NCBI GenBank assembly: GCA_040285825.1
Contig: JAUPSS010000007.1
Coordinates: 458,501 to 522,500 of the forward strand
Source of the DNA: Eukaryota sp. TZLM1-RC
Taxonomy: Eukaryota; Protista; Metamonada: BaSk clade
Direction: 5' to 3'
Length of the DNA stretch: 64,000 bases
Under the pieces are notes generated by a model, which was not told where the DNA came from, ran no database searches, and was given only the letters and a program-made list of their open reading frames with translations. The position numbers and the translations under genes were made by a program. Position 1 is the stretch's first letter. Each line of letters begins with the position of its first letter. Below are positions 10,912 through 41,751 of this stretch, in pieces.

Positions 10912-10997
10912 GATTAAAGATAATCAGATAAGGAGAGTGTGATGTAATGTTTTTGGAAATTCCAAAAAAGAGAGAACAAAGTCAGGTCGGCCGATCT

Positions 10998-18151: not shown

Positions 18152-21100
18152 CTGCCCTTTCTTCTTTTCGAGCGTCGAGGCCTGAAAGGAGTAGCATTAA
18201 CATTATTATTAATATTATCAGAACGACGTTTACGGCGTGAAGGATGAGAGCGAGTATTAGATAGAGACTTGGAGATTTCTTTGTAAGTAGAGGTGTTTTG
18301 AACAGTCGAAATCAGCTCAGTGGTAATATGATTGCCAGGACGTTGTACTTGACAGTAATCACCATCCTGACTGAAGACTTTCTGAATCACGTGCTCTTCA
18401 GCATCGCCAGCAGCAACCCAGGAGTGAAATTCATCATCTGCTGGTAAACTGGAATGCCAAGGTTGGAGGTGCTTCACACTGGCTTTAACAACCATACCAG
18501 TACACAGATTCTTGATATCAGCTGAGGAGGTAGAGGGTGTGTCAATAACTAAGAGTGGCCCTTTGTAATTACCGTGTAACTTAGCCGTGGAAGACGAAGC
18601 TCGTTTCACCAATTGGCCAGGAGAGAAAGGGTTGGCTTCGATTTGGGAATCACGAGGAGGAGCCTTGGAAGCTTGACGGAGCTCTGCTTCCTCCTGTTTC
18701 TTCTTCAATCTAGCAAATTTAGATTGAATGTCGTTGATGTATGTTGACTCAGACGTTGAGCTTTCTAAGGTCTCTATAATTTTGCCGGGGTCAGCTCTGG
18801 GGCTAAAATCTGAACCAAACATGAGCTTGTATGGAGAGTAACCTGTAATCGAACTCTTGGATGAGTTGATTAACAATTGTACATAGGGTATGTACTCTGA
18901 CCATGCATTGTAGGCGTTAAAGTCTACGAGCAGCTTCCTCAAATTCTGCAGAGTGTCACGGTGACGGCGTTCGACTAAACCGTTGAACTCAGAGAAGTGA
19001 GGGACGGACTTTGAGACCTCTATGCCAAAAAACTCATATAGAGCGTCGAAGACAGCTTTTGAGAACTCTGAACCGTTGTCACTATGAACTATGAATGGGA
19101 TGCCGAATATCGCACATACCTTCCATATGAGAGCGTCAGCGGTAAGGTTGGCGTTGAGTTCTTTGAGAGGGACTATGATAGTGAACCTCGTGAAGCTATC
19201 CACAAACACAAGAATGTATCTGTGGCCATCTTGATCTTCTTGAAGAGGACCAATGACGTCGACGTTAACTCTTGCAAATGGTCTGTCAGCCCACAAGGAA
19301 GCAGTTGTAGGGACATGCAGTTTGGGGACTGGTGCTGTCTTCTGACAGGAGGGGCATTCCTGGACGTGCTTGATCATGTCAGAAAGCATGTTGGGCCACC
19401 AGTAGTCGCTGTTCTTGAGTCTGAGGAGACTTTCTGCCTTACTGGGGTGGCCACCTTGCGGGAGTCCATGTAGAAGGTTAAGCGTATCCTTAACCAGTGA
19501 TTGAGGAATCACGATTTTGTGCTCTGGAATTAGATAAAGATCTAGACGACTATCCAAAGTACAGTTGTTTAACGAGGTGTCCTGGTTAGCGAAGGCTCGC
19601 CTTTGTTCGGACCTGATCTTGTAGAGCCATGGCTCGAAGAGTGGAAGGTCATTGGGGCATTTTTCTTGAAGGATAAGCACCTTCTCGAATGTATGGAGAT
19701 CTTCAACGAAGCATCTCTCTGACTCAGTTTCGTCAATCCTATTAGTGTAGAAGATAGGGTGAAACTCTTGGTCGTTGGAATGGACCAGATGGTTGATGGT
19801 ATGGTTGTCTTGGGGCGGTACTATCCTAGATAGCATGTCTGCCCAATGGTTCTCTTCCCCTTTGGTATGAACGATGTCGAATAGGAACTCAGAAAAGATG
19901 GGAAGTCACCTTCTGACTATTCTGTTTTTGTTCAGAGCGGTCAGCATGTAAGTAAGGTTTTGGTGATCTGTGAAAATGATGAGACGCCTTCCTTTGAGGT
20001 AGTTCTCGAAGCCACTTTTGGTAAGCATGAGAAGGATAGCATAAAGCTCCTTCTGTACCGTGGGCCAGTTCTGCTGGGAGTTAGTCAACAATCTGCTGAA
20101 GAAGCTGATTGGTCTACATTTCCTATTGAGTAAGGAAGTACCAGGGTCCTTAGTGGGTCCTATTTGTTCCCAAATCACGCCGCCAACTGCTATATCAGAG
20201 GCATCACAACTAATTAGTACTTGGTTATCCACCGGAGGTAAGTTTAGAGGCATATGTTCCGCGATCAGACGTTTGATTTCGGCTAAATGGTAGTCGTGAG
20301 TGTCTTTCCACTGCAACCGACGTGGTTTGCCATGTGTTAATTTGATGATCGGGGCAACATGCTTGGTTACCTGGGGAAGCCATTCCCTAATGAAGTTGGC
20401 TGAGCCGATAAGGCTACGGGCGTCTTTCACAGTCGTAGGTCTGGGAAGGTTCAGTAAAGACTCCGTGCATGTAGGATCTATGGTCCTGGTTTTGTGTTGG
20501 AATTTGCTACCAAGGTTTTTCTTGGGTGTCTAGAGGACAGAAAATGGCACTTGGAAAATCCAAGGCTAACTCTACAGGTTCGAGCCTTCTCAAGGACACG
20601 TCTCAAGGAACTCGTTGAAAGTTCTACCTACTATAATGATGTCATCTATATAGATGAATACACCGTCTCTGGAGAAGATCTCTGCCATAACGTTCTGGAA
20701 AACTGCAGGAACGTTCTTGAGGCCGAAAGCAGCACGTTTAAACATGATACTTTTGCCAGGGATGCTTAAGGCAGTCTTCTCCCAGTCCTTTTCTGCAATT
20801 TTTAGTTGCCAAAAGGCTTTGGGGAGGTCAAGGGTACCGATGAAATTGGCTTCCGAAAGGAAGACTAGCACATCGGATATTCTAGGGAGATTAGGTTCAA
20901 CGGGAACAGTGTTGGCGTTGACTCCGTCCTTGCCGCTGTAATCACCAGTAATGCGAGGCTTACGATGATCAGGGTATACCACAAGACATATTGGAGAGCT
21001 GAACTCATGGTTCGATGGTACAGCAAATCCAGACTCGACGAGTTCATCGAACATCTGTTCGGCGACTTTCTGCTTCTCGGGGTTTAACCTACGAGGGGGT

Positions 21101-21345
21101 CGTCTGACTCGAATGCTTTCATCATGAAAGTTGATCTCCATTGGAGACATCTGAGACTTGGGAGATTCGATGGTCGAATTCAGCCTCAGGCAGAAGTAAT
21201 GTACGATGTTCCTCATCCATCTTGATGAAGAGGCCTTCATCGTTCAATAAGCCTAGGTGATGCAACAGGTCTCTACCAATTAGTAACATATTGTTGCCAG
21301 GAATGATGGCCAAGCTATGTTTCACATGTACTAGTTGGGTTACAC
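18136..21345 (-). pseudogene. Gypsy pol (RT, RNase H, integrase), with frameshifts and a premature TGA
   Basis: RT motifs LDLPKAFWQL, FGLKNVPAVFQ, YIDDII. RNase H motifs CDASDIAVGG, FTDHQNL. An in-frame TGA at 19906-19908 replaces the conserved W (RIVRRW). Integrase HHCC and D,D,E motifs (VNVDVIG, HSDNGSEF, VERRH). Confidence 0.9.
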
Positions 21346-22820
21346 TACCGAGTCTGAAGCTCAGTGTGCCTTTTGCTGATCCTAAAGTTAATGCAATGGT
21401 TTGTCTTTACCATGTTGCATCTCTCTGCTAAGTCAACAGTGATGACTGATATCGAAGCTCCAGAGTCGATGATCCCTTCTATTTCACAATTATTTATTGA
21501 AAAATTCAATTTTAAATTTTTGCGTGCGACATCGGAGGTGTGGACCATGAAGATATCGCTATGGGACTCTGAGTCTGGGTTCGAGTCGAACTCATAATTG
21601 AAACAAGGTTTATTTGGTGTTTCGATCGTTGTAGCTGCTTTAAGATTCTGGGTAGTTAAATGATTAGTTAAACACTTAATCCACTGGTTGGAGACTGAGG
21701 TTTGTTTCGATGGTGTTTTACATGTTGGAGAGCTGTTTCGCACTATTGAAAACAATGAACATTTGCTGGAACATTGCTTTGGTGTATTACAAGTTGGAGA
21801 GCTATCTTGCTCTATAGTAAACAGTGGGTATTTATGTGCACGTTTATTACTGCTGGAAGGGCCCTTGCCTCTTCCTCTACGTCTACCTCTGCCTCTACTA
21901 CTACTACCTCTTGCCAAATATGCTTGAACTGCATCTGGGTTTGCATCTCGCCACTGCTTGGATCGCTGGCAATCAGGGTCAGGACATTCGTTAATAGTGT
22001 GGCCTGGAATACCACAGAATCTACAGAGACCAGCTTTATCTCTTTCTTTCTTAATTTGTGACTTGCTCCTTTTGCTAAGTTGAGCAGGGGCGACGCTGGA
22101 ACCCGCAGGCTTAAATTTGCCTATTCGTTTCTTGTCCTTTGGGTTTGTTCTAACATAGTGACCCATATGTTGTTGATAGCTATCACTTATGTTGGCCCTT
22201 TGCTCATCGTAGGATCTTGCTGAACACCAATTCATGTATTCAGCAGCCAGGATGTCAACAAATTGTTGTAATGTATGGTGTTGCCAAACATCGGGTGTGG
22301 ACCATACAGTTCTCAGATTGTCGCTGATGGCCTGGATACCAACAGAATCAATCATATGGGTTGCAATTTCCCGGTTTTGAATGCGCTGTAGGAAATGTTG
22401 ACCATACATGGCACGATGGCTTGCCTTGACGTCAGAAATGGCAGTACTTCGTGAACTTGTTCTCATCAACCTCACAGTGAAGTCGCCCCAGCGATTCCTA
22501 AAGTCATGAATATTCCAATTCATCTGGACTCTATATAACTGATTCCTCGCTGTTTCTAATGTGCTATACTGGCTGAGGTGTAAAATTGATTCCCATATTT
22601 GGTTCTCATTTATGTTGTCGATAGCTGAGATACTATCAGACATAGTCGAAAACCTGCCTTGGGCTCTCAGAGCGGCCAAGCACTCTGGAGTAACACAGGA
22701 GGCAATCCTACGAGGGTCGCCCTGAGCAGCAGCTCTGAATCGGTCCCACTCGTGGAGAGAGGAACAGGAAGACTGATAGGAACCACAGGAACATCCATAG
22801 ATGGAGTGGAACCTTGACAT
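21345..22820 (-). CDS. Gypsy gag-protease ORF (frameshifted at the protease C-terminus)
   Basis: CCHC knuckle CRFCGIPGHTINEC and aspartic protease motif IIDSGAS. Confidence 0.85.
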   Translation of the reverse strand: MSRFHSIYGCSCGSYQSSCSSLHEWDRFRAAAQGDPRRIASCVTPECLAALRAQGRFSTMSDSISAIDNINENQIWESILHLSQYSTLETARNQLYRVQMNWNIHDFRNRWGDFTVRLMRTSSRSTAISDVKASHRAMYGQHFLQRIQNREIATHMIDSVGIQAISDNLRTVWSTPDVWQHHTLQQFVDILAAEYMNWCSARSYDEQRANISDSYQQHMGHYVRTNPKDKKRIGKFKPAGSSVAPAQLSKRSKSQIKKERDKAGLCRFCGIPGHTINECPDPDCQRSKQWRDANPDAVQAYLARGSSSRGRGRRRGRGKGPSSSNKRAHKYPLFTIEQDSSPTCNTPKQCSSKCSLFSIVRNSSPTCKTPSKQTSVSNQWIKCLTNHLTTQNLKAATTIETPNKPCFNYEFDSNPDSESHSDIFMVHTSDVARKNLKLNFSINNCEIEGIIDSGASISVITVDLAERCNMVKTNHCINFRISKRHTELQTR

Positions 22821-23113
22821 GGAGGGTGAGAGGAAGTATCACTTCTCTCGCCACCAGAGGGTAGTTCTGTTCCCAACTGAGGAGTTTGGGAGGAAGAACT
22901 TGAAGCATTGGGTTGCGTGGCAGAATCTCCGGAAGGAGGAGTCGACACAGGAGGAGGAGAAGCATTGCTTCCCTCGGACCCAGTTGCCAACGGTTGTTCT
23001 GGTCCCGACTGAGGAGTTCGGGAGGAAAAACTCGAAAGGTGAGACGTAAGAGGATCAGTCCTACCAGTCTCGGAGGTGTCATTGGAACCACCCAAAGGTG
23101 ATCCAATACGTAT

Positions 23114-23261
23114 TGATGATTTGCGGGGGTTAGACATAGTATACCTGAAATGTAAAGTAGTTTATTTTAAGGGAAAGAGGATTTCCCTTAACCTAAGCGC
23201 GTGGGCGCATTGATACAATAAACTATAAATAAACTATTATAAATATTATCCAAGGCTAACA
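23114..23261 (-). repeat. 5' LTR of the Gypsy element (148 bp)
   Basis: Direct repeat of 17993-18151; TG...CA ends. Confidence 0.93.
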
Positions 23262-25485: not shown

Positions 25486-28400
25486 ATGTCGATCTACTTC
25501 TTTGCGATAGGCGAAGATTGTAGGGATCGAGTAGAGGTTGTCTCGAGCTTAGCACAATGGAAACCACATCACTCCTATTTTGTTGAACGAGTTGGCTATA
25601 GCCGTGCTTTTTACAGATCTTTTTCATTCAATGAGGTTGTAAACTTCGAATACAAGTATGCAGAGTGTTATGAGCACAGCATCAAGTGGGAGGAAGGGAA
25701 CAACCGTTTGTTCCATGGTGTTCCATCCGCTCCCTTTGTTACTGATTTTTTTCGGTTTGATTCACAAAAACAGCTATCCCCCCTTGACTTTCTTTTCTCA
25801 ATAGCTGATCTCATCAATGCTGCTTCCTTCGACGGTGCTCCCAACACTGTTCTCAACAACGTTGTCCCTTCGTTTCTCCGTTTTTGTGATCATCACATTC
25901 AGTCTAACAGATTCCAGCCTGATCAAAACCTCATCTATGTTGTCAATACAATTCTCACCTTTATACCTACATCATTCCCTCCTCTTGGTCATCGGTTTCC
26001 TGACCTCTTGTTTCTTCTTACTGATGAGCACTTTCCACGTGTGATCTATCATTTGGATCTCTCAGTTTCTCATGATCTTCACCTCCTTAAACAGATACAC
26101 CATAGAATCTCATCAAATTCTCAACTTTGTAAATTTACTCTACCCAAATACAGAGTCCTCACCACTCCACAGATTGACAATGAAGTTGTTTCAATGTTTA
26201 CTCACTCATTTTCCGCTTCTATGCATGATGTTTCTCTTGTATCCAATATCTTGACTAATGACTTGGCATCACCTTTAGCTGTTGGTATTGGAAAATTGGT
26301 TTATGATTTGATTCCACATTTTTATTTGGCTTTGGAATTAAATCAATCAATTACTGATTGTTTATATCACCATCTTGGTCAGTTTAAAGTTGACTATTTA
26401 GCAAAATTTTTGTTCAAAAACTTCAGGACTGAAATTCTTGACAATTCTCAGTTGTTTGACCATACTATGTCTCGAATTATCAATGACGATCTAAGCCATT
26501 GCTATTTACTTTTGCTCTACAGTCACTTAAACAATAGTAAATTCTTAGAGGGTAGGTTGAGCCAATTGAAGTCCAGTCAAGTCTTTAGAATTCTTTTAGT
26601 TTTAATTGAGTATTTTGACCTATCATCAACAACAGTTTCCATAATCGAACGGTTGATTCATCAATCAAATCCGAGTGAACTCTACAAGTCACTTTCCCGC
26701 AAAGTAACTCAAGCCATATCTCCCCATCATCCCCAATCATTTTCTGGGTTTGGAAAGTATGCTAAAATTCTCAACGCATTGGCTGAACCTCTCCCTGATA
26801 ACAATTCTGTCATTGATTTAGGTAATCCTTTACTTAGATTCGCGTATGTTATTTTTTCAAAGGATTCATTACAATGCTTGGATGGTATTGTGGAAAGATT
26901 CGAAGAATTGAATGATTCTTTTGATGTAACCATCAATGAATTTAATTATTTGGATAATGGACATTTCCAGCAGCTTATTGATAATATTCCTCCCAGTTTA
27001 ACCGCTTTACACCATGTAGAACGAAGGATTTCATCCGAATTTAATACTATGCGAGATTCTATTAAGGCCAAAAGACAAGTAGTCAATTCTGTTCTCAATA
27101 TCGCACAAGCTCTTGGCCTCTGCACGATTGAAATTCGTGATTTAATTGCAAAGCTCAAGGACGGACATCTTTCTGCTAAGGTAGTACTTGAAATTCCTCC
27201 TTCTATGGTGGTATCAGATGTCGTTGCTTTAATTTCTGAATATATACAAGGTAATGGTGAAGTTGAATTATACAAAAGAACCAGTACCTTGCTTTCAAGT
27301 CATTTGTTTAAATATTACAGAGACAAAGTGTTGATTCAATACAATAGTCCCCCAAATTCTAGCCCTAGCCCTAACCCTAATCCAAGTGTTGTTATGGTTC
27401 AGGAGGTTTTGCAAAATGTACTTGTTTTTATTGGAAAATTGAACAGTGACAGAACACCTGTTGAGTCAATTGTACCTGTTTATGAATGCTTCACCCCCAA
27501 GCAGTTGGAGACTGAGATCAAGAAGCTTTCAGTTGTAAATAATTCCCTAACCAGAGAACCTTTGTTGAACCTTCAAGCTTGGAGTATGAGGGCACAGTGG
27601 AGTGATATTGTGGCCTTATTTTATGAAATTCAAAAAAATAACCCCAGACTCAATTTGAGACTTGATTTTGGATTGGAAATCCCCGCTTCTATTGAAGGGT
27701 TTACTCTTTTACAAGAGTTTCGTCAATTGTCTGAATCACTACAACAAGTTCGCATTCAAACTTGTGACCAATGCAATTTCGCCAATCCTCCACTCTACTT
27801 ACAATTACTAACGCTTCTGCTCAATGTTAATGAGCTTTATGATGTATTGGACAAGAGATCTGATATGGCGACAGATGTATTGATGTCAAAGCTGTTTTCT
27901 TCAGTGGTTACTTCTGATTCAACTAACAATAATTTCCTCAGATTACTTAATGATAGAGATAGTTTCTACCATATGGTTTTATTACCTTTATTTGTTTCAA
28001 CAGAGCCAATTACCCTAAGCGAGTTTTTAGTCATAGTTCATGAGTTTATTGTTACAAACGGTTTACACGATGCACAATTATTTACACAGTTCTGTGCTGA
28101 TTTCACTCAGGTCAAAGTTTCTGCTGCTATTATTGATGAAACAATTGCTAATGCAGGTAGCCAATCAGCATTACTTGAAATATTTTCCAAAACTGATTTT
28201 AATAGTGCAATGTTACTCTTTGATCTGGAAAATATTTCCGTCTCGCTTCGTGTAGTTACATTAGGTGATCAAAAAACTAAAATATTGACTGATAGATTTG
28301 AACATGCCAGAGCTGAAGCAATTCTCCAATCAAAAGAAACACTTAATCGTAATAATTCCAAAGAAGATAGTTCTTCTGTTGATTCTGATAAGCTTGAATT

Positions 28401-31400
28401 ATTTGAAAACATTTGCAGTGCTTGTGATTCAATATTAGTCATTAATAAGGAACTTCAAGATTTAGCCTACCCCTTAATACCTAATAACAATGGTCAAAAG
28501 CTGCAAGAAGTAGCAGTAATTGAAAATGATCAGTATCGAGGAGGCGAATCGTCCATTGGTGTTTTATCTTACAAAAATCAACAACAAAGGAAGCTTAACA
28601 GATGGAGAGGATTGATAGAAGATGCCCAATCTGGTCGATTCAAAGGATTTAATGCCCACGAAATTGTCAAATACATCCAGGGAAATGATGTTGATTTAAA
28701 GCATATATTTGGTACAATAGAACAAAGCAATGTTGTTTTTGATAGTAATAGTAGCCTTGAAAACATTTTACAAATGTTCAGCTGCAATGATTCCCCCCAG
28801 GATAATGGTGACATGACTTTTTCTTTAATTTATTACAAAAGCAAATCTTGCTCCCACCTTTTTATTGATCTTTTGAGCATAATGAGGGAGCATTCTGTTA
28901 ACCCCGATGTAAGATCAATTTTGTTATGTAACTCCGAAACTTCTTTGTCTACCTTGAAGGCTATTTTATTCGATAGTCTTGATGAAACTAGAATTGTCTT
29001 TGGAGTGAATACACTTTCTTACACTGTGTTTGAAGGCTTGGTTAGTTTTATTAATTCATCCAAACCCCAATTTAATGTCATATTCACAGGATGTAATGAT
29101 AGCTTACCCAATGCAGTTCCCCAGATTTTGGAATTTCCTGCTCCCAATGCGGACTTGATTGAATATTGCCAATCAATCAGCAAGGTCATTAGTTTGCTTC
29201 ATTCTGATTTCCCAGGACAAGGTAAAACTACGGTGGCCAGACAACATTGTAATGTTAGTCTTCAGCTTGCTGGTTTTATTACCAGAAAAGATACGCTCAA
29301 GGTTTTAAACAAGTTATCAGAAAGAAAGGCCAAGGTTATGTTGCATTTAAACATCCAAGAACCAATAGATGTAATGAAAGGCTTGTTTGATTTAAGTAAA
29401 TGGAATGGACACTCTCTTCATTTGGATAATGAAGACTTTTATAATTTATGTTTAGTGGTATTTTCCTTATCCTATTTACAAGGGTTGCGCCAAGATGGTG
29501 AATTGTTTTTGTTGAAAAATTACACCAAAATTTACATTGAATTACCATCTGTACGGCCAGACGAGTCATGGTTAGACATATTTGTGCAATCTGTTTTTCC
29601 CCATGCTAGTATAATCAAACATAACGTATCTTACCAGCCAGATGGTTATGTCCCTGTAGAAGAAGATGAAGTTTTAGGCGGTGAGGTTTTGAAGGCTTTG
29701 AAACTGTTACTACCTTCAGAGCAGCCATCTTTCCATATGTTATTTGACCGTGAATTTGCGGGTTTTGAACCTCCACATTGTGAATTCTGGTCATACAGGT
29801 TATTGACCTCTATCATTCGGTTTGCCGGTCGACAGTTGCTATATCTGAACAACGATGATCAGTTCAAGTGTATTGAAGACACTCAAGTTAATGACGGAGG
29901 CCACAAGGCAAGAAATCTGGCTCAAAAGAAGGATGCCACTTCTGTTCTTCTAGGATTCACACGCAAAGTCGTTACTTTGTCTACACCCCTCAAGAACCAA
30001 TCCCTTGAGGATACAGGTAGTTTGGTTATTAGTTGGCGCAATATGCGTCAGTTGATGCTGGGATATGGGTCTCAAGACCACAAACCAATCGTCGTACCTC
30101 AAGCTTTGACTACTTATGTTCCTCAGGCGTTAAAGGAGATGATTGCTGTACAAACACAAAAACCTCTAAATAGCTCTGACCTCCTTGTTGGTGCTGAAGT
30201 ACCTGAAGAAGAAGAGGACAAGAGAGCAATGTTGAGAAATTTCACGCATACTGATCCCTTCTTTGAAGCAGATTTGTTACAAACACAAAATTTGGAAAAT
30301 TTTGTGCTAACAAATGATAATTTTATGAAAATGTTGTTGCTGGCGCTTAGATTAAAGGCAAATATTCCCACTATTCTAGTAGGATCCGCTGGTGTTGGAA
30401 AGACTCATTTACTTAAATACCTTTGTTTTGTATTGTTTACACTAAGAAATGTACCCCAAAATGAAAATCAATTAAAACTTCAAAAACAGCGTATTAACTT
30501 GTTTCACGATATCAGTGTCAACGCTGGAACTTCGTTTGAAGAGATTAAAAGTGCCATTCAGAGTGTCAATAAATTGGCTCGTAATTTGGGTACACAATCT
30601 CCAGAAGGTCTTGTCCAAGGTGAGGAAAATGAATGTTTATTCCCGGTTTTGTTTTTGGATGAGGTTAATTCTAATGATTTTCTTGCTAAGATCTCATTCT
30701 TGATTACTAATCGTCGGTTTGATGGTGTCAAATTGGACAACAGGGTTCGTATCATTTGCGCCATTAACCCCTTTGTCAAGTCATGCATTGAAGGTAATTC
30801 CAAACTTTACAACGTGTGGGAGTGTCCCTTGTCTCTCAAACTTTATATGATGGATTTTGGTTCATTAAGTCAAGAAGACGAGAGAGTATATGTTTCTAAG
30901 ATTGCTCAAAAAGCCAACCTCCAACATAATGACATTCTTGCAGAAGTATTGGTCATGGTACATACACGGCTTACTGAAAAAACTTCTCACGGATTTGTTA
31001 GACCCAAGAACGTACCCTGGATGGTTTCACTTCGTGATGCGGTCAGAGTGACCAGAATTATTCAAAAATTAATTGATGTTTGTGGCAACTTAAAATCTGA
31101 CCATTTATTCAAAAGAGCTCTTTGTCCTGAAACCACATTTGATGCCAAAGAACGGACTAAGTTTATTTTTCTTTTAAGTATTTGGGCTTGTTATGTTCTA
31201 AGGGTTCCAAATACGAATCAACAATCATCAATGTTGAATGCCGTTAGTGAAAAGCTAAATATTGGTGTCAATCATCTCAATAACAGTCTCCATCATTTAT
31301 TCAAGTTGATTGATCCTAAGGCCACATTCAATGTAGTTCCAACTAAGTATTTCCTTGAAAACTCAATGGCTCTGTTTATTGCCATTCTCTCAAAAACACC

Positions 31401-34400
31401 AATCATTTTGATTGGACTTCCAGGCACTTCCAAGTCATTATCTTTGTCCATGCTTTTGACATATCTAACCACGGTCACAGATAGGTCCATTCACCGCCGC
31501 ATTGTGACATTATTACCCCATCATTATCAGGGGTCTCATTCCGCCACTACAGAATCAATTCAAAAAGTAGTCAACAGCATTAATGATGCCGAGGAAAGTA
31601 TACAATCCCGAAATGATGTTGTTCATGCATTGATTATGGATGAGATCAGTCTTCTTTTAGAAGCCCCTGCGAATCCTTTAAAGTGCTTACATACCGTCCT
31701 GGAACCTCGGGACACTCCCATACCAAAGTTTTCATTTGTTGGTATTTCGAATAATGAGTTTGATGCAGCACCATCATCGAGATCAATAGTTATACAACGG
31801 GATCAGCCTGGTATCAATGAGTTAGAAGAAATCATCAAGAAAATGGTTGGAGATGAAAACCTGAAAAACTCTATCAGTAAGTTAGTATCAGGATTACATA
31901 CTCGAATGAACCAACTAAAACGGAATTTCTTTGGTATGAGAGATTCTTATCAGCTGGCTAAATTCTTGGAACTGTATATTACACAAGATATGGAATCTCT
32001 ATTAGTGAGGTTAATGCGCGCGTATGGAGGGTTACCGGTTAAGAACAAATTGGTCAGGCTCATTCAGAAGCATTTTGTTGATACGATTGCACGAAAACAT
32101 TTCTGGCAAAACAGTGCTGTCACGGTTACCAAGGATTCATTACTGAATACCATTAGAACCGCCTTTGTACAATCATTTCGGGACAATAGCCCAACATCAA
32201 GGCATATTTTGGCGATCGGAAGTGTGGAATTAGTTGAGGCTATTGTTTCCAGTTCTGATAGGGCGCAAGATTTGGTTCACATTACAGGCAGTCAATTTAG
32301 AAAAGATGCATACAACTCTACTTCTTATAAGCAACTTTCGACAATAACTTCAGCGGTTAATAAAGGACAGCTTATACTGTTGCAGGGAACATCCCATTTG
32401 ATTGGGGCTCTGTTTGATATCCTTAACAAAAATTATGTCAAGGCGGAAGGAGAAAAAGGAATTGCCAGAATTGCACTTGGCACTGTTGCCAATCATTTGG
32501 TTGAGGTCCATAAGAATACAAAGGTTATAATTGTGGTTACAGAATCTGAATTGGCGAAAACACCAAAAGCATTATTAAACCGATTAGAGAAGTTTAATCT
32601 CACGGAACTTATTGCTGAACAATCCCATATTCCTGAGTACTTGAATTCTGAGTTTAATCGACTTGGATTACAATATACGTTGCCATCATTACATGATCAA
32701 TCCATCAATCAATTACGTCATAGCTTCCTTTCTCAGGTTCACTTGCTTGTTTTACCACAGGAAAAAGTTGACGAAATACTACTAGATCTTGCCAACCCGC
32801 TCCATTGTCTACAAGCAACCAATCAGGATGCGATTTTTGACCTTATTAACAACAACTGTGGTTATTTATCTTTAGAACAAGTTTTGAGGAAGAAATCTGC
32901 TGAGAATAAGGATGCAATATTTGTCATTGCATTATCTAATTACTTTGGTTCTGTTAACTTTGACATTGATCTTTATGATCATTGTGCGGTAACCTCAATT
33001 GGCTCTATTACGACCACAGATGAGCTGGTGTTCAAACTTGATCAAGAAGCCAAGAAACTCAAAAAAGATAGTAAAAACACTAGAAACTCGAAAAACAGAT
33101 GTCTATTTGTTGTGAGAATCGATGGGGAGGAATCAGTTCATTTTTACAACGTTATTTTGCAATTGGATTATATAGCAGCCAGCTACAATACTGCTGACTT
33201 TGCTCTTGACATTGCTGTATGTCTCATTAACCCTGTCGATTTCTATGTGTCCCCATTGAGAACACAACAAGGATCCTCATTGGTTTATGTGGATGCTGTC
33301 AATTATCAAAGCACCCTTGGTAATTTTTCCTCATTACAAGATTTGATAAACTTTGATATTAACAGATTAGATCAGTACAATCTGAGTGGAATTTTCAAAA
33401 ATTTGGTAATGAGAGTTTTTGTCACTCTAGATTTACCAAAACCGCTTCTGTCATTGACCCACTCATTTGTCCTTCGGTTGAGCCAATCTCCACATTCGTA
33501 TTTGCTTAATATATTCCAACGATTTATTGATCTAGACATTATCTCAGCTGATATTGATAATGTCATTTCTTATGAAACAACCAAAATTAAGGAGAGTACA
33601 GTTTCGGGTCTTTTAGAAAAATCTGTTTTTACCAAGTTTGAAACCAAAATTCGCAAATTTTTGATGACATTATTACCTTCTAATCTTTTGATCCCTTGTT
33701 GTCTTTCAGATGACGAGTTTGTTGATAGACTCAACTTGTGTCTTGATTCTTGTTTTGAACAGAAGAGACAAAGCAATGCTGTAAATCAACTATTGCCCGT
33801 GCAGCTTTCTTCCACAGGAGATTATCAAGCTTTGGGTAGTCACAGCACTATTCCATTTATTTATCATTTGTGTGCCATTCTAGATCATTGTATCAAACAA
33901 CAAATACCTGAAAACGAATGGAAGCAATACTTTAGCGTCTATTTGCCAATTGAAATTTGTGATATTTTTCATAATGCTGATCGCAATAATCTTATACGGG
34001 CGGTTTTAGGATATTTTTCCCACAGTCACGTTATATGTGAATACCTCATATCAAGAGGAGAATTTGCTAACGGTGATTTCTTTGACGTTGGTTGTCAAAT
34101 TTTGAAATTTTTGGTTGACCCCGACTCTATTCCACGATTGAGTGCCTTTGAATATTTCAAGACTTTCAATCCAAACGTTACTGTAGAATTTGATTCACTC
34201 GCTTCCACTGCTGTTTGTTTCTTGAGCGAAGAAGCAAAACCAGCCGTGGAAAATATCATTTCAACAGTGAATTTTAATGATATTAATAATTCCTTTTCAG
34301 CTATTTTATTAAATTGGCTTCGTGTTGGCCTTGCCCATGATTGTGCAAGTGATTTGATTTGTGCTAATGAAATTACTTCCATGGAGGATTTAAAACAAAG

Positions 34401-37400
34401 TTTAGGCCTTTTTATTTCGGATATTACTCCAAATCGGACAAAATTATTTGGCGCAATTATTCAGTATATTGACACTGAAACTTTACAGTATTTGATCCTT
34501 TCTTGTCCTACACCTGAGCTTTGTGGCCAAATATTGACACTTTATTTTGATTTGAAAATCTCCCAAATTTTGGAAACAAGGGACCATTTATTTAGCTTCA
34601 TTGATGACGTTACTGCTCACTGTGGGCCTTTATTTGAACTCAACCACAACGGAAATGAACAAAAGTTTATGCAGAAGTACGCATTTATCACCTCATCTCT
34701 TGGAACTACTTTTAGATTCAAATATCCTGATCAATGGAAAACTGAAAATTTGGGGGTCATCGTTGACCGTATTAGCCAAGCTTCTCATCTTTGTACGTTA
34801 ACATTGTTATCTACTGCTTATTACGTTGTGCTTGATTTTTTACTGGAAAATAATTCCCCATTACCCATTCAAGTTATTCAGTTTTCTCTGGACATTGGCG
34901 AACCCACCAAACTCTATGGTGCTCAATCTTTGTTATTAAAAAATTTATTAGCTGGATACTCTGAAGCAGAAGTTTCTGAAAAATTGGTTGACCTTATTCA
35001 AAATTCTATTGGATCACGAACAGAAAAAGAGGAAATTTTGAAACTTTTAACCTTTAATGATCCCTTCTTTTCTCCTTTATTTCACGATACTGATTGGTCT
35101 GAAGATCCGGAGTTGATGAGCCAAATTGAAGCTGTCAAAGCAGGCAGATTTTCCTTATCAGATCCAATTAATGGAACTCAATTAAAAACAATATTAGCTG
35201 TCAAAGACTTGAATATTCTCAGAGCCAATGAAGTTATTGCTGAATTTTGTTCAAACTTCAATGAATATAGGTACCTTCTCGTTTGTGTCGCTGAAACGCT
35301 TTCCATTCCTGTGTTTGATGACTTTTTAAAACTTGATTTTACTCAATTGGATCGTTCAATTATTCCAACATTACTACCCCATTCTGCGATAGCCAAGTAC
35401 TATTTCACTTCAGATCCAAATGCTAGATCAATTGTTTATTGCGCTAATTGTTTTGCTAGAATTGCAACTACTGCTACTGGTACAATTACTCATATTCCGC
35501 CTGGAAAACTTGCTGGGTCAGTTACAGACAGATTTTGTCCACAAAGTTCAGGATGCCAAGGGTTCAATCGACAAGAAGTTGGTGATTACAGACAATACAA
35601 TGATTGGTTGTTGAATGCCACAGTTTCTAACTGGAGTTCTGGAGTTGTGCATCTCAATACTGAAGTGTTGAATTTCTCCGATGATTTCAAAGTTGTTTTG
35701 AATATTCAGGATACAGAAAGTTATTTAGTTGGCCACTGCTTGGTCATTTGTCTATTAATTGCAAAGAATCTGATTGACTTTAATTTTGCTATTTACCTTT
35801 GTTATAAACTAGAGGAAGATAATCCAGTTGCTTATCTCCGTGATTCTCTCTACAAATGTTTAGCTTCATATGCCCAACTTTTAGGAATCAAAACCGTTCC
35901 AGAAGCTGCTAATATTTTAGCCAACAAAATTAGACAATTTGTCAGGTTCAACCAGTCTTTTGTTTGTTCAAATTTTGGAAATAGAATGAATTTGGAACAT
36001 CAACTATACGACTTTATCAAAAGTTTACCAAATGAACCTCTGCCTAAAGCACGAATTCAAGTCCTAAGTGTGGCTCAAAATCTTGTTCAATTATCACCAG
36101 AATCTTTAGTAAGTTCAGGTTTAACTACAGAAGCTATTACGTCAATTATTGCTACTCTCACTCCAATTACCCCGCCTCCTGACAGAGGTCTTCCTCTTCC
36201 AGATATTGATGATTTGAGCGAAGAAGAATCTATATTTGACATTAACCAAAACGATAGGGTTTATCTCGTGGCTGCTGCTTATTTACCACCATTATTACAG
36301 TTTATTTCCAAGGCACGGGCTTTTGCTTCTCAATATCTTGAAAATCAAGTGTCGAGAATGAGAATTTCTGATTTTGTCAATAATGGCAATTCTCAAATTT
36401 TCACGGAGTTTAACCATAATTTCCGAAGATTCTACCAAATTTTACAATCTAAAAATTTGCATCGATTAAGAGTTGGCAACAGAGCTGTTCACTTACCATA
36501 CGAATTCAATCTTCATCAAAATTTGAAACATATCTTGTTAGATGACGCTCAATCATGCTCACTGTTCCCCTTCATCAATACCATCATTACGAGACATAAT
36601 AGAATCACAAAGTTATTTTCTCTTACCACCAAGTCAATTTTTGAATTTAATGATCAATCATTTTCTGAGGTTCAAGTTACTGAAAAGTCAATGTTTTTGC
36701 ATCCATTTTCAAACAGCTTTGTCAATTCTGATCTCGTTTATCTTGGCTTGCTTATCAAGAATTCGGTCAGAAATTATATATCTGAGATCACAAAAACCAA
36801 CTACAAACTTTCCAACACAAGTGATCTATATTCACTTGTTCCAGAAGTTAGCCAAATTCTGGGATATATGACACGTGATTCAATCGATACCTACGATAAT
36901 CATAACCTTAAATATTCTTTACAATCGCTTGATTTCAAGTCAAAATTAAATAACTACAGCAGTTTGGCGATTATTTTACACACAATTCGATTGATTGAGC
37001 AAGTTGAAAATCCAGAAATTTCTATTTCTCAGTTTATTGAGGCTAATGCTTTGACCAGTAACTTTGATTCTTGTTTTACAAAAACATTTGGAGGAATGGC
37101 ACTATTAGAAGTTCCTTCATTAATGTCAGCAGTGGAATCATCATTTTCAATCAAGGATTTAGTCGACAATGTTGACCCGGAAATTGTCAATCAACAGGCT
37201 GCAATTCCATGGGAATTGACCCAAAAAATTGTTAATTTGGCTGAGAGTGATGCTAAAATACTGTTCCATCAATTAAAAGCTTTTGTTTTGCGAAAAATTC
37301 TGACTGGTAGTATTCAAAAATCTCAATTACAGTCGAAGATCGGAGATCTGTGCATTTATTCTGGTCCTTATTCAGAGGATCATGAAGTCACGTCATTGTT

Positions 37401-37464
37401 CATTGAGATGAAAGTCGAGGAAGTGTTCCGAGTTTTAAATATTTTGAAAGACGTTGGAGTGTGA
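25486..37464 (+). CDS. RNF213/mysterin-like giant AAA+ protein (3992 aa, single exon) with an N-terminal CBM20-like domain
   Basis: N-terminal VEVVSSLAQW..FEYKY..WEEGNNR (CBM20 pattern). AAA modules occur in RNF213 order: SDFPGQGKT; PTILVGSAGVGKT/LFLDEVN/ICAINP/SLRD; PIILIGLPGTSKS/YQGS/LIMDEISL..NPLKCLHTVLE..FVGISN; GSQF..D/LFDILNKNY/LLNRLEK. Confidence 0.85.
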   Translation: MSIYFFAIGEDCRDRVEVVSSLAQWKPHHSYFVERVGYSRAFYRSFSFNEVVNFEYKYAECYEHSIKWEEGNNRLFHGVPSAPFVTDFFRFDSQKQLSPLDFLFSIADLINAASFDGAPNTVLNNVVPSFLRFCDHHIQSNRFQPDQNLIYVVNTILTFIPTSFPPLGHRFPDLLFLLTDEHFPRVIYHLDLSVSHDLHLLKQIHHRISSNSQLCKFTLPKYRVLTTPQIDNEVVSMFTHSFSASMHDVSLVSNILTNDLASPLAVGIGKLVYDLIPHFYLALELNQSITDCLYHHLGQFKVDYLAKFLFKNFRTEILDNSQLFDHTMSRIINDDLSHCYLLLLYSHLNNSKFLEGRLSQLKSSQVFRILLVLIEYFDLSSTTVSIIERLIHQSNPSELYKSLSRKVTQAISPHHPQSFSGFGKYAKILNALAEPLPDNNSVIDLGNPLLRFAYVIFSKDSLQCLDGIVERFEELNDSFDVTINEFNYLDNGHFQQLIDNIPPSLTALHHVERRISSEFNTMRDSIKAKRQVVNSVLNIAQALGLCTIEIRDLIAKLKDGHLSAKVVLEIPPSMVVSDVVALISEYIQGNGEVELYKRTSTLLSSHLFKYYRDKVLIQYNSPPNSSPSPNPNPSVVMVQEVLQNVLVFIGKLNSDRTPVESIVPVYECFTPKQLETEIKKLSVVNNSLTREPLLNLQAWSMRAQWSDIVALFYEIQKNNPRLNLRLDFGLEIPASIEGFTLLQEFRQLSESLQQVRIQTCDQCNFANPPLYLQLLTLLLNVNELYDVLDKRSDMATDVLMSKLFSSVVTSDSTNNNFLRLLNDRDSFYHMVLLPLFVSTEPITLSEFLVIVHEFIVTNGLHDAQLFTQFCADFTQVKVSAAIIDETIANAGSQSALLEIFSKTDFNSAMLLFDLENISVSLRVVTLGDQKTKILTDRFEHARAEAILQSKETLNRNNSKEDSSSVDSDKLELFENICSACDSILVINKELQDLAYPLIPNNNGQKLQEVAVIENDQYRGGESSIGVLSYKNQQQRKLNRWRGLIEDAQSGRFKGFNAHEIVKYIQGNDVDLKHIFGTIEQSNVVFDSNSSLENILQMFSCNDSPQDNGDMTFSLIYYKSKSCSHLFIDLLSIMREHSVNPDVRSILLCNSETSLSTLKAILFDSLDETRIVFGVNTLSYTVFEGLVSFINSSKPQFNVIFTGCNDSLPNAVPQILEFPAPNADLIEYCQSISKVISLLHSDFPGQGKTTVARQHCNVSLQLAGFITRKDTLKVLNKLSERKAKVMLHLNIQEPIDVMKGLFDLSKWNGHSLHLDNEDFYNLCLVVFSLSYLQGLRQDGELFLLKNYTKIYIELPSVRPDESWLDIFVQSVFPHASIIKHNVSYQPDGYVPVEEDEVLGGEVLKALKLLLPSEQPSFHMLFDREFAGFEPPHCEFWSYRLLTSIIRFAGRQLLYLNNDDQFKCIEDTQVNDGGHKARNLAQKKDATSVLLGFTRKVVTLSTPLKNQSLEDTGSLVISWRNMRQLMLGYGSQDHKPIVVPQALTTYVPQALKEMIAVQTQKPLNSSDLLVGAEVPEEEEDKRAMLRNFTHTDPFFEADLLQTQNLENFVLTNDNFMKMLLLALRLKANIPTILVGSAGVGKTHLLKYLCFVLFTLRNVPQNENQLKLQKQRINLFHDISVNAGTSFEEIKSAIQSVNKLARNLGTQSPEGLVQGEENECLFPVLFLDEVNSNDFLAKISFLITNRRFDGVKLDNRVRIICAINPFVKSCIEGNSKLYNVWECPLSLKLYMMDFGSLSQEDERVYVSKIAQKANLQHNDILAEVLVMVHTRLTEKTSHGFVRPKNVPWMVSLRDAVRVTRIIQKLIDVCGNLKSDHLFKRALCPETTFDAKERTKFIFLLSIWACYVLRVPNTNQQSSMLNAVSEKLNIGVNHLNNSLHHLFKLIDPKATFNVVPTKYFLENSMALFIAILSKTPIILIGLPGTSKSLSLSMLLTYLTTVTDRSIHRRIVTLLPHHYQGSHSATTESIQKVVNSINDAEESIQSRNDVVHALIMDEISLLLEAPANPLKCLHTVLEPRDTPIPKFSFVGISNNEFDAAPSSRSIVIQRDQPGINELEEIIKKMVGDENLKNSISKLVSGLHTRMNQLKRNFFGMRDSYQLAKFLELYITQDMESLLVRLMRAYGGLPVKNKLVRLIQKHFVDTIARKHFWQNSAVTVTKDSLLNTIRTAFVQSFRDNSPTSRHILAIGSVELVEAIVSSSDRAQDLVHITGSQFRKDAYNSTSYKQLSTITSAVNKGQLILLQGTSHLIGALFDILNKNYVKAEGEKGIARIALGTVANHLVEVHKNTKVIIVVTESELAKTPKALLNRLEKFNLTELIAEQSHIPEYLNSEFNRLGLQYTLPSLHDQSINQLRHSFLSQVHLLVLPQEKVDEILLDLANPLHCLQATNQDAIFDLINNNCGYLSLEQVLRKKSAENKDAIFVIALSNYFGSVNFDIDLYDHCAVTSIGSITTTDELVFKLDQEAKKLKKDSKNTRNSKNRCLFVVRIDGEESVHFYNVILQLDYIAASYNTADFALDIAVCLINPVDFYVSPLRTQQGSSLVYVDAVNYQSTLGNFSSLQDLINFDINRLDQYNLSGIFKNLVMRVFVTLDLPKPLLSLTHSFVLRLSQSPHSYLLNIFQRFIDLDIISADIDNVISYETTKIKESTVSGLLEKSVFTKFETKIRKFLMTLLPSNLLIPCCLSDDEFVDRLNLCLDSCFEQKRQSNAVNQLLPVQLSSTGDYQALGSHSTIPFIYHLCAILDHCIKQQIPENEWKQYFSVYLPIEICDIFHNADRNNLIRAVLGYFSHSHVICEYLISRGEFANGDFFDVGCQILKFLVDPDSIPRLSAFEYFKTFNPNVTVEFDSLASTAVCFLSEEAKPAVENIISTVNFNDINNSFSAILLNWLRVGLAHDCASDLICANEITSMEDLKQSLGLFISDITPNRTKLFGAIIQYIDTETLQYLILSCPTPELCGQILTLYFDLKISQILETRDHLFSFIDDVTAHCGPLFELNHNGNEQKFMQKYAFITSSLGTTFRFKYPDQWKTENLGVIVDRISQASHLCTLTLLSTAYYVVLDFLLENNSPLPIQVIQFSLDIGEPTKLYGAQSLLLKNLLAGYSEAEVSEKLVDLIQNSIGSRTEKEEILKLLTFNDPFFSPLFHDTDWSEDPELMSQIEAVKAGRFSLSDPINGTQLKTILAVKDLNILRANEVIAEFCSNFNEYRYLLVCVAETLSIPVFDDFLKLDFTQLDRSIIPTLLPHSAIAKYYFTSDPNARSIVYCANCFARIATTATGTITHIPPGKLAGSVTDRFCPQSSGCQGFNRQEVGDYRQYNDWLLNATVSNWSSGVVHLNTEVLNFSDDFKVVLNIQDTESYLVGHCLVICLLIAKNLIDFNFAIYLCYKLEEDNPVAYLRDSLYKCLASYAQLLGIKTVPEAANILANKIRQFVRFNQSFVCSNFGNRMNLEHQLYDFIKSLPNEPLPKARIQVLSVAQNLVQLSPESLVSSGLTTEAITSIIATLTPITPPPDRGLPLPDIDDLSEEESIFDINQNDRVYLVAAAYLPPLLQFISKARAFASQYLENQVSRMRISDFVNNGNSQIFTEFNHNFRRFYQILQSKNLHRLRVGNRAVHLPYEFNLHQNLKHILLDDAQSCSLFPFINTIITRHNRITKLFSLTTKSIFEFNDQSFSEVQVTEKSMFLHPFSNSFVNSDLVYLGLLIKNSVRNYISEITKTNYKLSNTSDLYSLVPEVSQILGYMTRDSIDTYDNHNLKYSLQSLDFKSKLNNYSSLAIILHTIRLIEQVENPEISISQFIEANALTSNFDSCFTKTFGGMALLEVPSLMSAVESSFSIKDLVDNVDPEIVNQQAAIPWELTQKIVNLAESDAKILFHQLKAFVLRKILTGSIQKSQLQSKIGDLCIYSGPYSEDHEVTSLFIEMKVEEVFRVLNILKDVGV

Positions 37465-38673: not shown

Positions 38674-41600
38674 ATGTCCTACTCCACACGCTCCAGGGCT
38701 CGAAGCAAACCAGTCTACTCTCCTATTAGTACTCGTCGTAGATCGCTTCGCTCCACATCCCAAGCACGTGAATCAAAGCCCTTTCCAACAGAGTCTTATG
38801 ACAGTGATTTTGACGAGTCCCTCACATATACTGTCCGTGATTCTGTAACTCCTTTATCTTCAGAGTTTTCACAGCCCCTTTCCTCTGCTGATGACTCCCC
38901 CTCCACACCTGGAACAAGAAGGAGTCCAAACCCTGACCTCAACACCAACACTTCAAATTCTGTCAAGCGTCGTTCCAAGACTCTTCCTCCTTCTGAAACT
39001 CCTCTACGTAAGTTAACCAAGCTCTCAGACTCTGAACCTTCTGAACCACTTACGGATCTCTTTGATAACTCCCAAAATCCTCAACAAAAACCTACAACGG
39101 AAACTGATGACGAGTCTGTTTTGACTGTCAGTTCAGAATCTGAATATCATGCCAGTCAGCATCATGATCAAGAAAGTGATTGGTCCTCAGAAGTCAAGAC
39201 CAGAGCTCAAAGAAGGAGACCAAAAGGTCAAAAACGATCAAAAGGCCCCACTTTAAGAGATCGGCAAAAACTAAAAAAACCTCAATTATCACTTAAAAAT
39301 TCATTATCATCTTTATGGCCTACTAGGTCAAAATACGGAGGACTTTTGAAAAATTCCAGAGAAAAAGATGCTTGTGAAAGCTCAGAAGATGAGTCTCAAA
39401 AACAATCAACTCCTATAGACGTAATCAAACCTATCAAATTTGATGGTCATGATTGGTCAAGCGTTGGGGGTTTAAAACACGTGATACGGTCCTTAACAGA
39501 GACCATAATTCTACCATTGTTATACCCTGATATTTACTCTTCTTTTAATGTTCCTTCACCCAAAGGTGTGCTATTGGTTGGACCTTCAGGTTTGTTTCTA
39601 ACCCTCTGACTGTTACTAATTTTAGGCACAGGAAAGACACTAGTTGCTCGAACAGTGGCGGCAGTCACGGGACTCAACTTCTTTATTCGCAAAGGAAGCG
39701 ATATCATGTCTAAGTACGTAGGAGAGGCTGAGCGTCAGTTACGGCTTATGTTCCAGGCTGCCAAGGAATATGCCCCTTGCGTCATTTTCTTTGACGAAAT
39801 TGATGGTCTTGCTCCACCAAGGGCTAGCCGTAGTGATAATCATTATAGCTCTGTTGTAGCGACCTTGCTTGCATTGCTTGATGGCATAGAAGATAGAGGG
39901 AATGTTTTGGTAATGGCAGCGACAAATAGGCCAGACAATATTGACCCTGCTTTGAGAAGACCAGGCAGGTTTGACCGTGAGCTCTATTTTGATCTTCCAG
40001 ACGAATCAGGCAGGCTCGAAATATTAAAAATTTTCACCCAGAAATGGGCTCATCAACCACATCCTAATCTCTTAGTTTCTCTGGCCAAGCAAACGATTGG
40101 CTACAGTGGAGCAGATCTTAAAGCTCTCTGTTCAGAAGCTGTGGTCAATTGTATAAGAAGATCTTTTCCTGAGGCCTATGTCTGTAGCAAACGACTGACC
40201 ATAAGTAATAAGAAATTTCTGGTAAATGATGTTGACTTTAAAATTGCTTTTTCTAGAATTGTGGCAACATGTGAACGCTCAGTCGGGAAGAGCTCAAGAA
40301 AGGATCATACGTGTTATGACGTTTTGTGGTCGAATTTTTTAACTAATATGACAAGCTCAATCAATCAAAAATTGATTGATTATTCTGATTGTACTAAGCC
40401 CAGTTTTAATACTACACCCGGGGGATCTGGTTTAATAATAAACCAAGAGCAAAAACAATTGATTTTAAATTCAGAAGCTCAAAAATGGTTTGGATTGGTT
40501 CAAAATCATTCAAGAAGTCAAAGTAGTTCTTCTCTTTTAAAATGCTGCATTCGATCAGAAGATTTAGAATCAGCAGAACTGGCAATGAATTTATTTATAA
40601 AAAGGACGAATATTGCTAAAGTTGTTAACCTTTCCTTACCAAGTCTTTTGGAAAATAATAGCTCGTCAATAGAGTTTACGCTTTCTGATAAAGTCAAGGT
40701 TATTTTGAACTCTCAGACTCCATGTATTATACAACTATCAAATTTGATTGGTTGGTGGGACAATGTTTCGGTGGTTTGCAGGGAACTTTTAACTGATTTT
40801 TTCAGACGATCTTTCTTATTGCAAACTCGAGCTCTATTTGTTACCACTGTCGAAAGCTCTAATGATAATAATTTAGATTTGGATTTCTTTTTTACCTCAA
40901 ATTGTACACTATTTGAATTAAGTTTTCCTGAAATAGCAACAAATGATTTTGTTTTGTTTTTTAATTTCATCATCGACCAAGAACTGTCAAAATTTCAAAC
41001 ATTTGAAGATTTAAATATTCCTTTAAATGATGAAGTTTTGGATAGTTTGAAGGATCCTACCGCTGTTTTGTCTGTGGCTGACGAGAGACAAGTCGAAAAT
41101 TTGAAAGAGGAAAAGGAAAAGATCACCAGAAAATTGAGGCTTGAATTTAGAGAAGTTTTGCGATATTTGATGTCAAGATATTCAAATTTTATTGAATTTG
41201 AAGGTGCTGAGCTTAATTTGCTTCAAATTTTGACTAATGTCGATGATGATCTCTATTCCACTGTAGACCAGTTCGTTCAGGCCGTTTTATCGATGATTGA
41301 GGCTTATAGTAAAATTATTGTTGAAATGGAGCTTTCTACAATTGAACGTAAAATGCTCAATTCTAGACTTAAAGATTTTTCTGATGCTTTTCATGAACGA
41401 CTGGAATTCATACCAAAGAAATTCACCGAAAAAGCAGAAGAATTAGCTGAACAAATGAAACTTCAAGAGAAAGTCTCTGAAAGTCAACAGAATTCCATTG
41501 ACTGTAGTCTAATGGAAAATGACGTTAATTTGTTAAGTTCTCAGCCACTTGAACCATTGGGAATTGATTCTAAAGAATTGATTATGGCAATGGGGTCCAA

Positions 41601-41751
41601 ATTGGCAGTCATTTGCGTTGGAAAATCATTTTCTTTTGTAGATAACATTAGATTCAGGCTTGTGTTGTTTTTACAGAAAATGTCTCACAATGTGATGTCT
41701 CCTGATGTGTTGGCTGCTGAAATTGATCATTTCGTTCTTTCCGTTTCTTAA
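38674..41751 (+). CDS. ATAD2/Yta7-like AAA+ ATPase; join(38674..39589,39626..41751), ~1013 aa
   Basis: A 36-nt intron restores Walker A GPSGTGKT. Motifs FFIRKGSDIMSKYVGEAERQLRLMF, IFFDEIDGLAP, ALRRPGRFDRELYF. Acidic/Ser-rich N-terminus, degenerate second AAA and a bromodomain-like remnant. Confidence 0.88.

Follow-up and report, generated by a model that had tools for sequence, protein, structure and literature searches.

Within a window of 64,000 nucleotides (the whole stretch of DNA that was analysed; contig JAUPSS010000007.1 of assembly GCA_040285825.1, positions 458,501 to 522,500) from the metamonad Eukaryota sp. TZLM1-RC, a single intact and intronless open reading frame (ORF) spans positions 25486..37464 of the forward strand, stop codon included, and encodes a giant protein of 3992 amino acids (aa). 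The ORF listing, its translation and an NCBI gene model for an identical protein (JAUPSS010000007.1:483986-495964, GCA_040285825.1) agree on this gene, as a preliminary description of the DNA had proposed. Its start codon is the first ATG downstream of an in-frame stop, it is the sole long ORF in its region, and it continues uninterrupted for 12 kb in DNA of 35% GC, and is therefore not a chance ORF. Judged by its sequence, the protein belongs to the RNF213 (mysterin) family as a divergent member that lacks a RING; the AAA core, the C-terminal domain (CTD) and a CBM20 module are found in it, while a catalytic RZ finger is not. TZLM1-RC serves as type isolate for Skoliomonas litria, a free-living, haloalkaliphilic, anaerobic and bacterivorous metamonad flagellate from Lake Manyara, the food vacuoles of which are packed with bacteria (PMC11603281); the genome paper for Skoliomonas is PMC11316075. 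All features of the protein described below lie on the forward strand and are given in window coordinates.

The AAA core and its predicted nucleotide-binding sites

A PDB-wide phmmer search with the whole protein returned only RNF213 chains (E 7e-34), aligned to aa 1604-2372 (30295..32601), which correspond to the AAA3-AAA4 core. With a profile built from six skoliomonad relatives (alignment A1), RNF213 was recovered from the PDB at E 4.9e-78, the sole other row being McrB (E 0.73), and hhalign against five fish RNF213 proteins aligned aa 1604-2369 at E 3.8e-49. The weak Pfam matches in this region (AAA_7, AAA_5 and AAA_lid_7) are to families that RNF213 itself also gives. Midasin/Rea1 and the dynein heavy chain likewise form six-AAA rings from a single chain; no PDB chain of midasin or dynein reached E <= 1 in the searches with the single sequence and with the family profile, and the protein contains no MIDAS, no stalk/microtubule-binding domain and no linker signature. 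Affiliation of the core with midasin or dynein was thus rejected, neither kind of PDB search giving such a chain. The preliminary description, which had called the protein RNF213-like and had named grouping with midasin or dynein as the competing outcome, is borne out on this point.

Within the core, the two Walker A/B pairs fall where the preliminary description had placed them, near 30382 and 31414. The AAA3 pair comprises Walker A GSAGVGKT (aa 1633-1640; 30382-30405) and Walker B LFLDEV (aa 1722-1727; 30649-30666), and the AAA4 pair comprises Walker A GLPGTSKS (aa 1977-1984; 31414-31437) and Walker B LIMDEI (aa 2049-2054; 31630-31647). Further upstream lies a P-loop, PGQGKT (aa 1243-1248; 29212..29229), which together with both Walker pairs is invariant in six skoliomonad relatives. 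The preceding stretch, aa 1140-1253, matches fish RNF213 residues 2029-2175 in a collinear but weak hhalign alignment (E 6.6e-4, probability 27%) that ends in this P-loop. In mouse RNF213, AAA2 binds ATP without hydrolysing it, and only AAA3 and AAA4 are hydrolysis-competent (eLife 56185). By motif and position, the PGQGKT site would fit the AAA2 of RNF213 and is thus a candidate AAA2 nucleotide-binding site.

Overall, the protein shares with vertebrate RNF213 (human Q63HN8; 6TAX, 7OIK, 8S24 and 9JW1) an AAA3-AAA4 core in which both Walker A/B pairs are complete, a homologous RZ/CTD region and a CBM20 fold N-terminal to the stalk; a Walker-A-only site ahead of the core is a candidate counterpart of AAA2. 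The succession of CBM20, candidate AAA2 P-loop, AAA3, AAA4 and RZ/CTD is collinear between the two by hhalign; for the two main AAA modules, the preliminary description had already read the RNF213 order from the sequence. Differences are seen in length (3992 aa here versus 5207 aa in vertebrate RNF213) and in the absence of the RING. Collinearity with RNF213 also places the unannotated stretch at aa ~96-1100 (25771..28785) as the presumed N-arm/stalk; it is conserved across the skoliomonad relatives and has no Pfam and no PDB sequence match.

The N-terminal CBM20 module

Residues 1-92 (25486..25761) are modelled as a β-sandwich of CBM20 fold. Pfam CBM_20 (PF00686) matches aa 20-76 with E 4.8e-4 and 20.3 bits, under the gathering cut-off of 23.3 bits, and AlphaFold2 (AF2), run on the six-sequence alignment, predicts eight strands followed by a helix, with a predicted local distance difference test score (pLDDT) of 87.5 and a predicted template modelling score (pTM) of 0.83. 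Comparison of this model with 48,161 representative chains by VIA-align placed eight CBM20 domains at the top, with Z-scores of 8.0-9.0 that are well above those of other folds, 86-111 residues aligned and root-mean-square deviations of 2.2-3.6 Å. These belong to a maltogenic amylase, glucoamylase, laforin, STBD1, β-amylase (two entries), GDE5 and a maltotetraose-forming amylase, and three of them, those of laforin (4rkk, Z 8.9), STBD1 (8x8k, Z 8.8) and GDE5 (2z0b, Z 8.2), are cytosolic and bind glycogen. The best Foldseek matches of the same model, from E 1.4e-4, are the CBM20s of CGTase, glucoamylase and laforin. Modelling hence confirms a CBM20 fold for the N-terminus, which the preliminary description had proposed as a CBM20-like domain in residues ~1-75.

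Three residues recall starch binders, namely W25 in LAQW, K57 in FEYKY and W68 in IKWEEGNNR, which fall at the motif positions LxxW, EYK and WE..NR. These may stand at the positions of CBM20 binding site 1, an assignment made by motif recognition against the consensus, which identified no site-2 tyrosines, and not by residue-level superposition. In the glucoamylase CBM20 of Aspergillus niger, the key site-1 residues are W543, K578 and W590 (PMC9069913). The Trp/Lys/Trp motif positions would be conserved with laforin, STBD1 and GDE5 (and with AMPK-β, a CBM48 protein), which have the same fold as this N-terminus (Z 8.2-8.9); unlike the protein described here, laforin, STBD1 and GDE5 are small glycogen-directed proteins without an AAA or E3 module.

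The CBM domain is present in all skoliomonad relatives, standing at residue 1 in the protein and in its paralogue from the same isolate (P0003, described below), and behind variable extensions in isolate TZLM3-RCL. Scanned one by one, two of the six family members match CBM_20 and others match CBM_48, AMPK1_CBM and CBM53, all of them starch- or glycogen-binding modules and all sub-threshold, and the atlas feature leads for the module are AMPK1_CBM and CBM_20. The CBM of one TZLM3-RCL relative (P0007) reaches only E 0.1 against the AMPK-β CBM, and the CBM profile has no CBM match among PDB sequences. In human RNF213, the CBM20 occupies aa 378-515 (PMC11549300), compared with residue 1 here, where it is moreover recognisable by sequence motifs. 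The skoliomonad CBM profile did not match the N-terminus of fish RNF213. In an RZ-bearing RNF213-like protein of Glomus cerebriforme (P0021), aa 30-84 give a weak Pfam CBM_20 match (E 0.083) at a position like that of the skoliomonad CBM20; hhalign of the skoliomonad CBM profile against this N-terminus gave no support for it. Since neither the fish RNF213 nor the Glomus N-terminus is matched in sequence, common descent of the CBM20 modules is unproven.

Two N-termini in the clade have features of their own. The long extension ahead of the CBM20 in P0007 carries tandem units of ~25 residues at aa ~40-130 (EPPQTIIVNNTPDAKRSPILNPEAQ), and a 2422-aa protein of Skoliomonas sp. GEM-RC1 (P0004) has a BTB domain (PF00651) instead of a CBM20 before its RNF213-like AAA core and is without the C-terminal module. 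The architecture of P0004 reflects either an N-terminal domain swap or a fused or truncated gene model.

The RZ-like finger and the paralogous copy

The C-terminal third of the protein, aa 2793-3992 (33862..37461), resembles the E3-module/CTD region of RNF213 without its RING. No Pfam RING family was detected on the whole protein or on its segments, Pfam and PDB sequence searches with the C-terminal 1600 residues were empty, Pfam RZ (PF20173) was not detected in the protein, and an atlas feature search with the C-terminus gave no usable lead. A hidden Markov model (HMM) of the canonical RZ finger, built from 40 relatives, identified 40 fingers among 82 AAA-core matches and none in the metamonad clade; its scores on the skoliomonad proteins were non-significant (E 16-83), and an HMM of the skoliomonad RZ region found no other relative significantly.

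A cysteine cluster is nonetheless present at the same relative position in all six skoliomonad proteins, and profile alignment identifies it as a rearranged RZ-like finger (aa 3318-3363; 35437..35574). When the C-terminal 1300 residues of the skoliomonads were aligned by hhalign with 37 RZ-bearing relatives, the two matched with a probability of 96.9% (E 1.3e-10, 394 columns), in a register that sets the cysteine cluster exactly on the RZ finger and runs on into the CTD, so that aa ~3261-3707 (35266..36606) align with the finger and the domain following it. A full-length hhalign run, uncentred on the cluster, gave the same register, with C3319 on the first fish RZ cysteine (E 2.3e-3). An AF2 model of aa 2793-3992, although low in confidence, has only RNF213 structures as its seven top Foldseek matches, among them 9jwg_A, a focused map of the E3 module (E 3e-5 to 7.5e-4). 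Profile comparison thus shows the C-terminal part to be homologous to the RZ finger and CTD of RNF213. Besides this finger, no Cys/His cluster in the C-terminal third is invariant, and none is conserved upstream of it.

Rearrangement of the finger is common to the skoliomonad clade, which has C-x2-C, compared with C-x3-H in RNF213, and a longer loop; in this protein the second Cys pair also has an altered spacing, C-x5-C. In human RNF213, zinc is bound by C4505, H4509, C4525 and C4528, and the roles of nucleophile and general base are predicted for C4516 and H4537, respectively; with C4516S or H4509A, Salmonella, Listeria and Toxoplasma vacuoles are no longer ubiquitylated, while deletion of the RING has no effect (PMC11549300). 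The zinc ligands correspond here to C3319, C3322, C3351 and C3357, which are invariant in all six skoliomonads. At the nucleophile position, the protein has Thr3331 (35476-35478), at which all five skoliomonad relatives have Cys; its codon, ACT, is two bases away from TGY, and a single sequencing error is therefore unlikely. At the general-base position it has Gln3363 (35572-35574), where P0003 has His and four TZLM3-RCL relatives have Gln, Thr, Ser or Arg. The finger contains no spare cysteine. Of 40 canonical RZ fingers, 36 have the nucleophile Cys; the column of the His holds a residue in 31 of them, and this is His in 29. The alignment thus shows that this copy would lack the dyad by which RNF213 is known to transfer ubiquitin, and the preliminary description of a ubiquitylation machine, given Thr/Gln in place of Cys4516/His4537 and no RING, finds no support for this copy.

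The nearest relative, P0003 (P9112_010863, 3970 aa; annotated "Eukaryota sp. TZLM1-RC"), is encoded ~600 kb away on the same 3.2-Mb contig, at positions 3001-14913 of locus L001 (JAUPSS010000007.1:1085748-1103660). It has the same start, the same N-terminal CBM20-like domain and the same RING-less architecture, with an overall identity of 49% that rises to 64-72% within the AAA core, and differs in that it retains Cys at the nucleophile position (in QDCG) and His at that of the general base (in FNRH). In an unrooted maximum-likelihood tree of 81 AAA cores, built without an outgroup, the two are species-specific duplicates (Shimodaira-Hasegawa-like approximate likelihood ratio test [SH-aLRT] 100), and by parsimony the change from Cys to Thr at the nucleophile position would post-date this duplication and have occurred in the copy described here. 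Between the two, the proportion of synonymous differences (pS) is 0.75, i.e., saturated, and that of nonsynonymous differences (pN) amounts to 0.22 for the AAA core and 0.38-0.45 outside it; neither 12-kb ORF is interrupted. The saturated synonymous sites, these pN values and the intact ORFs therefore indicate an old duplication and a gene under constraint, not a fresh pseudogene. Dating the loss of the Cys with the GEM-RC1 relative (P0005) was precluded because its finger site cannot be aligned.

At that site (aa ~2378-2531), P0005 has a hydrophobic, Cys-rich, low-complexity-looking segment, suggestive of a broken gene or of a gene model that is frameshifted or wrongly spliced. Head-to-head with the P0003 gene, across ~530 bp, lies a gene for a 722-aa GTPase (L001:275-2472, reverse strand) with Pfam URGCP_GTPase and RHD3_GTPase. 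Among large GTPases of this type are interferon-inducible relatives in animals, and the P0003 and GTPase genes could be a co-regulated pair.

Besides P0003 (66% identity over the core region), the AAA-core search recovered fish RNF213 and proteins from two further Skoliomonas isolates, from Chilomastix, and from ciliates, fungi and many invertebrates. At least five RNF213-like proteins, whose N-terminal extensions differ, come from TZLM3-RCL; four TZLM3-RCL proteins make up a separate expansion in the AAA-core tree, in which the skoliomonads and Chilomastix are united as a clade (SH-aLRT 100). A giant AAA core of this kind (E 1e-66 to 1e-22) occurs in uncharacterised proteins of Stentor, Blepharisma, Glomus, Neocallimastix, Chilomastix, Nematostella and bivalves. 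Many of these protist, fungal and invertebrate proteins are annotated "RZ-type domain-containing"; most are without a Pfam RING, and among the relatives found RING families occur in fish RNF213 proteins only. Forty have the canonical RZ finger, unlike the protein described here, and none match the skoliomonad CBM profile. The remaining 42 of 82 relatives are without a canonical finger by the HMM, including those nearest the metamonad clade by AAA score (P0010-P0030: Chilomastix, Amphiura, Nematostella and bivalves), and members of the family seem often to have lost the finger or to have diverged strongly in it. Full-text literature searches found no papers on RNF213 relatives in protists. The preliminary description had inferred that the system predates animals or was retained in phagotrophic protists; an RNF213-like family beyond animals is indeed to be seen in public databases, while a pre-animal antibacterial ubiquitylation system is not proven by this gene alone. 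A pre-animal origin of the family is itself no new inference, as RNF213-like proteins of ciliates, fungi, Chilomastix and invertebrates are already public.

Candidate functions and genomic surroundings

The protein is probably a sugar-tethered ATP motor rather than an active ligase. A cytosolic location is expected because it has no signal peptide and strand 1 of the CBM20 begins at residue 2. The CBM20 would tether this cytosolic protein to an α-glucan-like polysaccharide, and the target could be either a microbial glycan or the cell's own glycogen. ATP at AAA3 and AAA4 would then drive conformational switching or assembly, as in RNF213. As the copy itself would be unable to form the E3-ubiquitin thioester, it may serve as a non-catalytic partner, sensor or regulator. 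This reading as a whole, i.e., a glycan-held cytosolic ATPase that cannot accept ubiquitin and would serve in a non-catalytic capacity, as partner or sensor and perhaps together with P0003, has in our judgement slightly better than an even chance of being correct.

Several points weigh against it. The CBM20 is predicted to bind sugar by its fold and motifs only, and in human RNF213 point mutations in the predicted sugar-binding residues of the CBM20 left recruitment unaffected (PMC11549300). The AF2 model of aa 2793-3992 is of low confidence (pLDDT 59.6), and its Foldseek template modelling (TM) scores against RNF213 are only 0.13-0.16. Clade-wide rearrangement of the RZ-like finger, together with absence of the His from four of the five relatives, may point to a non-canonical mechanism for the whole clade. 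Co-assembly with the catalytically intact P0003, finally, would be speculation.

A competing explanation, along the lines of the preliminary description, is an active, compact antibacterial machine, in which the CBM20 senses glycans and microbial surfaces are ubiquitylated via another nucleophile, an ester at Thr3331 or an RZ-independent route. Retention of the full RNF213-like architecture, down to the four zinc-ligand cysteines, favours this explanation, as do the selection to which the long intact ORF points, the bacteria-filled food vacuoles of a bacterivorous host (PMC11603281) and the dispensability of the RING in human RNF213 (PMC11549300). With both the nucleophile Cys and the base His replaced in a finger without a spare cysteine, and with C4516S, the nearest human analogue of the hydroxyl substitution, being inactive (PMC11549300), we nonetheless consider an active ligase unlikely; the RING is also absent by Pfam, the prey bacteria are located in vacuoles, outside the cytosol, and lipopolysaccharide or another microbial ligand is without support. 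Rather unlikely, too, is a housekeeping glycogen or polyglucan factor, in which the CBM20 would tie the ATPase to storage α-glucan for granule turnover or quality control, by analogy with laforin, STBD1, GDE5 and AMPK-β, with no immune function and with any ubiquitin chemistry left to P0003 or a partner. The presence of cytosolic glycogen binders (laforin, STBD1 and GDE5) among the top structural matches speaks for it, as do the matches of relatives to AMPK1_CBM and CBM_48, the retained Trp/Lys/Trp motif of starch-binder site 1 and the lack of a signal peptide. Glycogen, however, goes unmentioned in the Skoliomonas papers (PMC11316075 and PMC11603281), the sole characterised member of the family is an immune and lipid-droplet factor, and the URGCP/RHD3-type GTPase gene adjoining P0003 is compatible with an immune or membrane reading.

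Decay of a redundant duplicate, on its way to becoming a pseudogene, would account for the loss of both catalytic residues and the C-x5-C spacing of the second Cys pair, in transposon-rich surroundings. Against this, 3992 codons have remained free of stops and frameshifts despite saturation of synonymous sites relative to P0003, the Walker motifs, P-loop and four zinc cysteines are invariant, and the AAA core remains 64-72% identical to that of the paralogue. Decay is thus highly improbable, and a pseudogene was rejected as the main explanation on the invariant motifs and on an ORF kept intact through that saturation. The proposed ATPase could also be placed in a more elaborate setting. RNF213 assembles into coats (PMC11549300), and were the CBM20-stalk-AAA ring-RZ layout ancestral to eukaryotic RNF213-like proteins, P0003 and the Thr/Gln pseudo-ligase might divide the labour between them and co-assemble as an ATP-driven coat on glycan-bearing targets, e.g., bacteria that have escaped from vacuoles. 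We consider this scenario decidedly doubtful; if it were true, glycan-directed ubiquitin coating would be an immune mechanism older than animals that has its own regulatory subunit.

To our knowledge, no enzyme other than RNF213 is known to attach ubiquitin to bacterial lipopolysaccharide. Both its mode of target recognition and the role of its CBM20 are unsettled (PMC11549300). A relative from a protist, with the classic starch-binder motif in its CBM20, provides a small, intronless system in which to probe a possible glycan-directed ancestral role, and a natural pair of copies with and without the Cys/His dyad can separate ATPase or scaffold roles from ligase roles. New in this respect are (i) a CBM20 at residue 1 of a protist RNF213-like protein that can be recognised from sequence, (ii) a rearranged RZ finger common to the skoliomonad clade, and (iii) a natural pair of dyad-positive and dyad-negative paralogues.

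The surroundings of the gene are rich in transposable elements and kinase genes, just as the preliminary description had portrayed them. Upstream, a Ty3/gypsy-type element with integrase (rve) and reverse transcriptase/RNase H (RT_RNaseH) ORFs lies on the reverse strand at 18136-23137, ending ~2.3 kb before the start codon. A classical AAA gene of 1013 aa (PF00004 and AAA_lid_3), for which the NCBI model joins two ORFs, follows on the 3' side at 38674-41751 on the forward strand, and a protein kinase gene is likewise found downstream. Two reverse-strand ORFs of 368 aa each, at 49588-50694 and 55957-57063 and thus ~6.4 kb apart, are members of a tandem kinase array.

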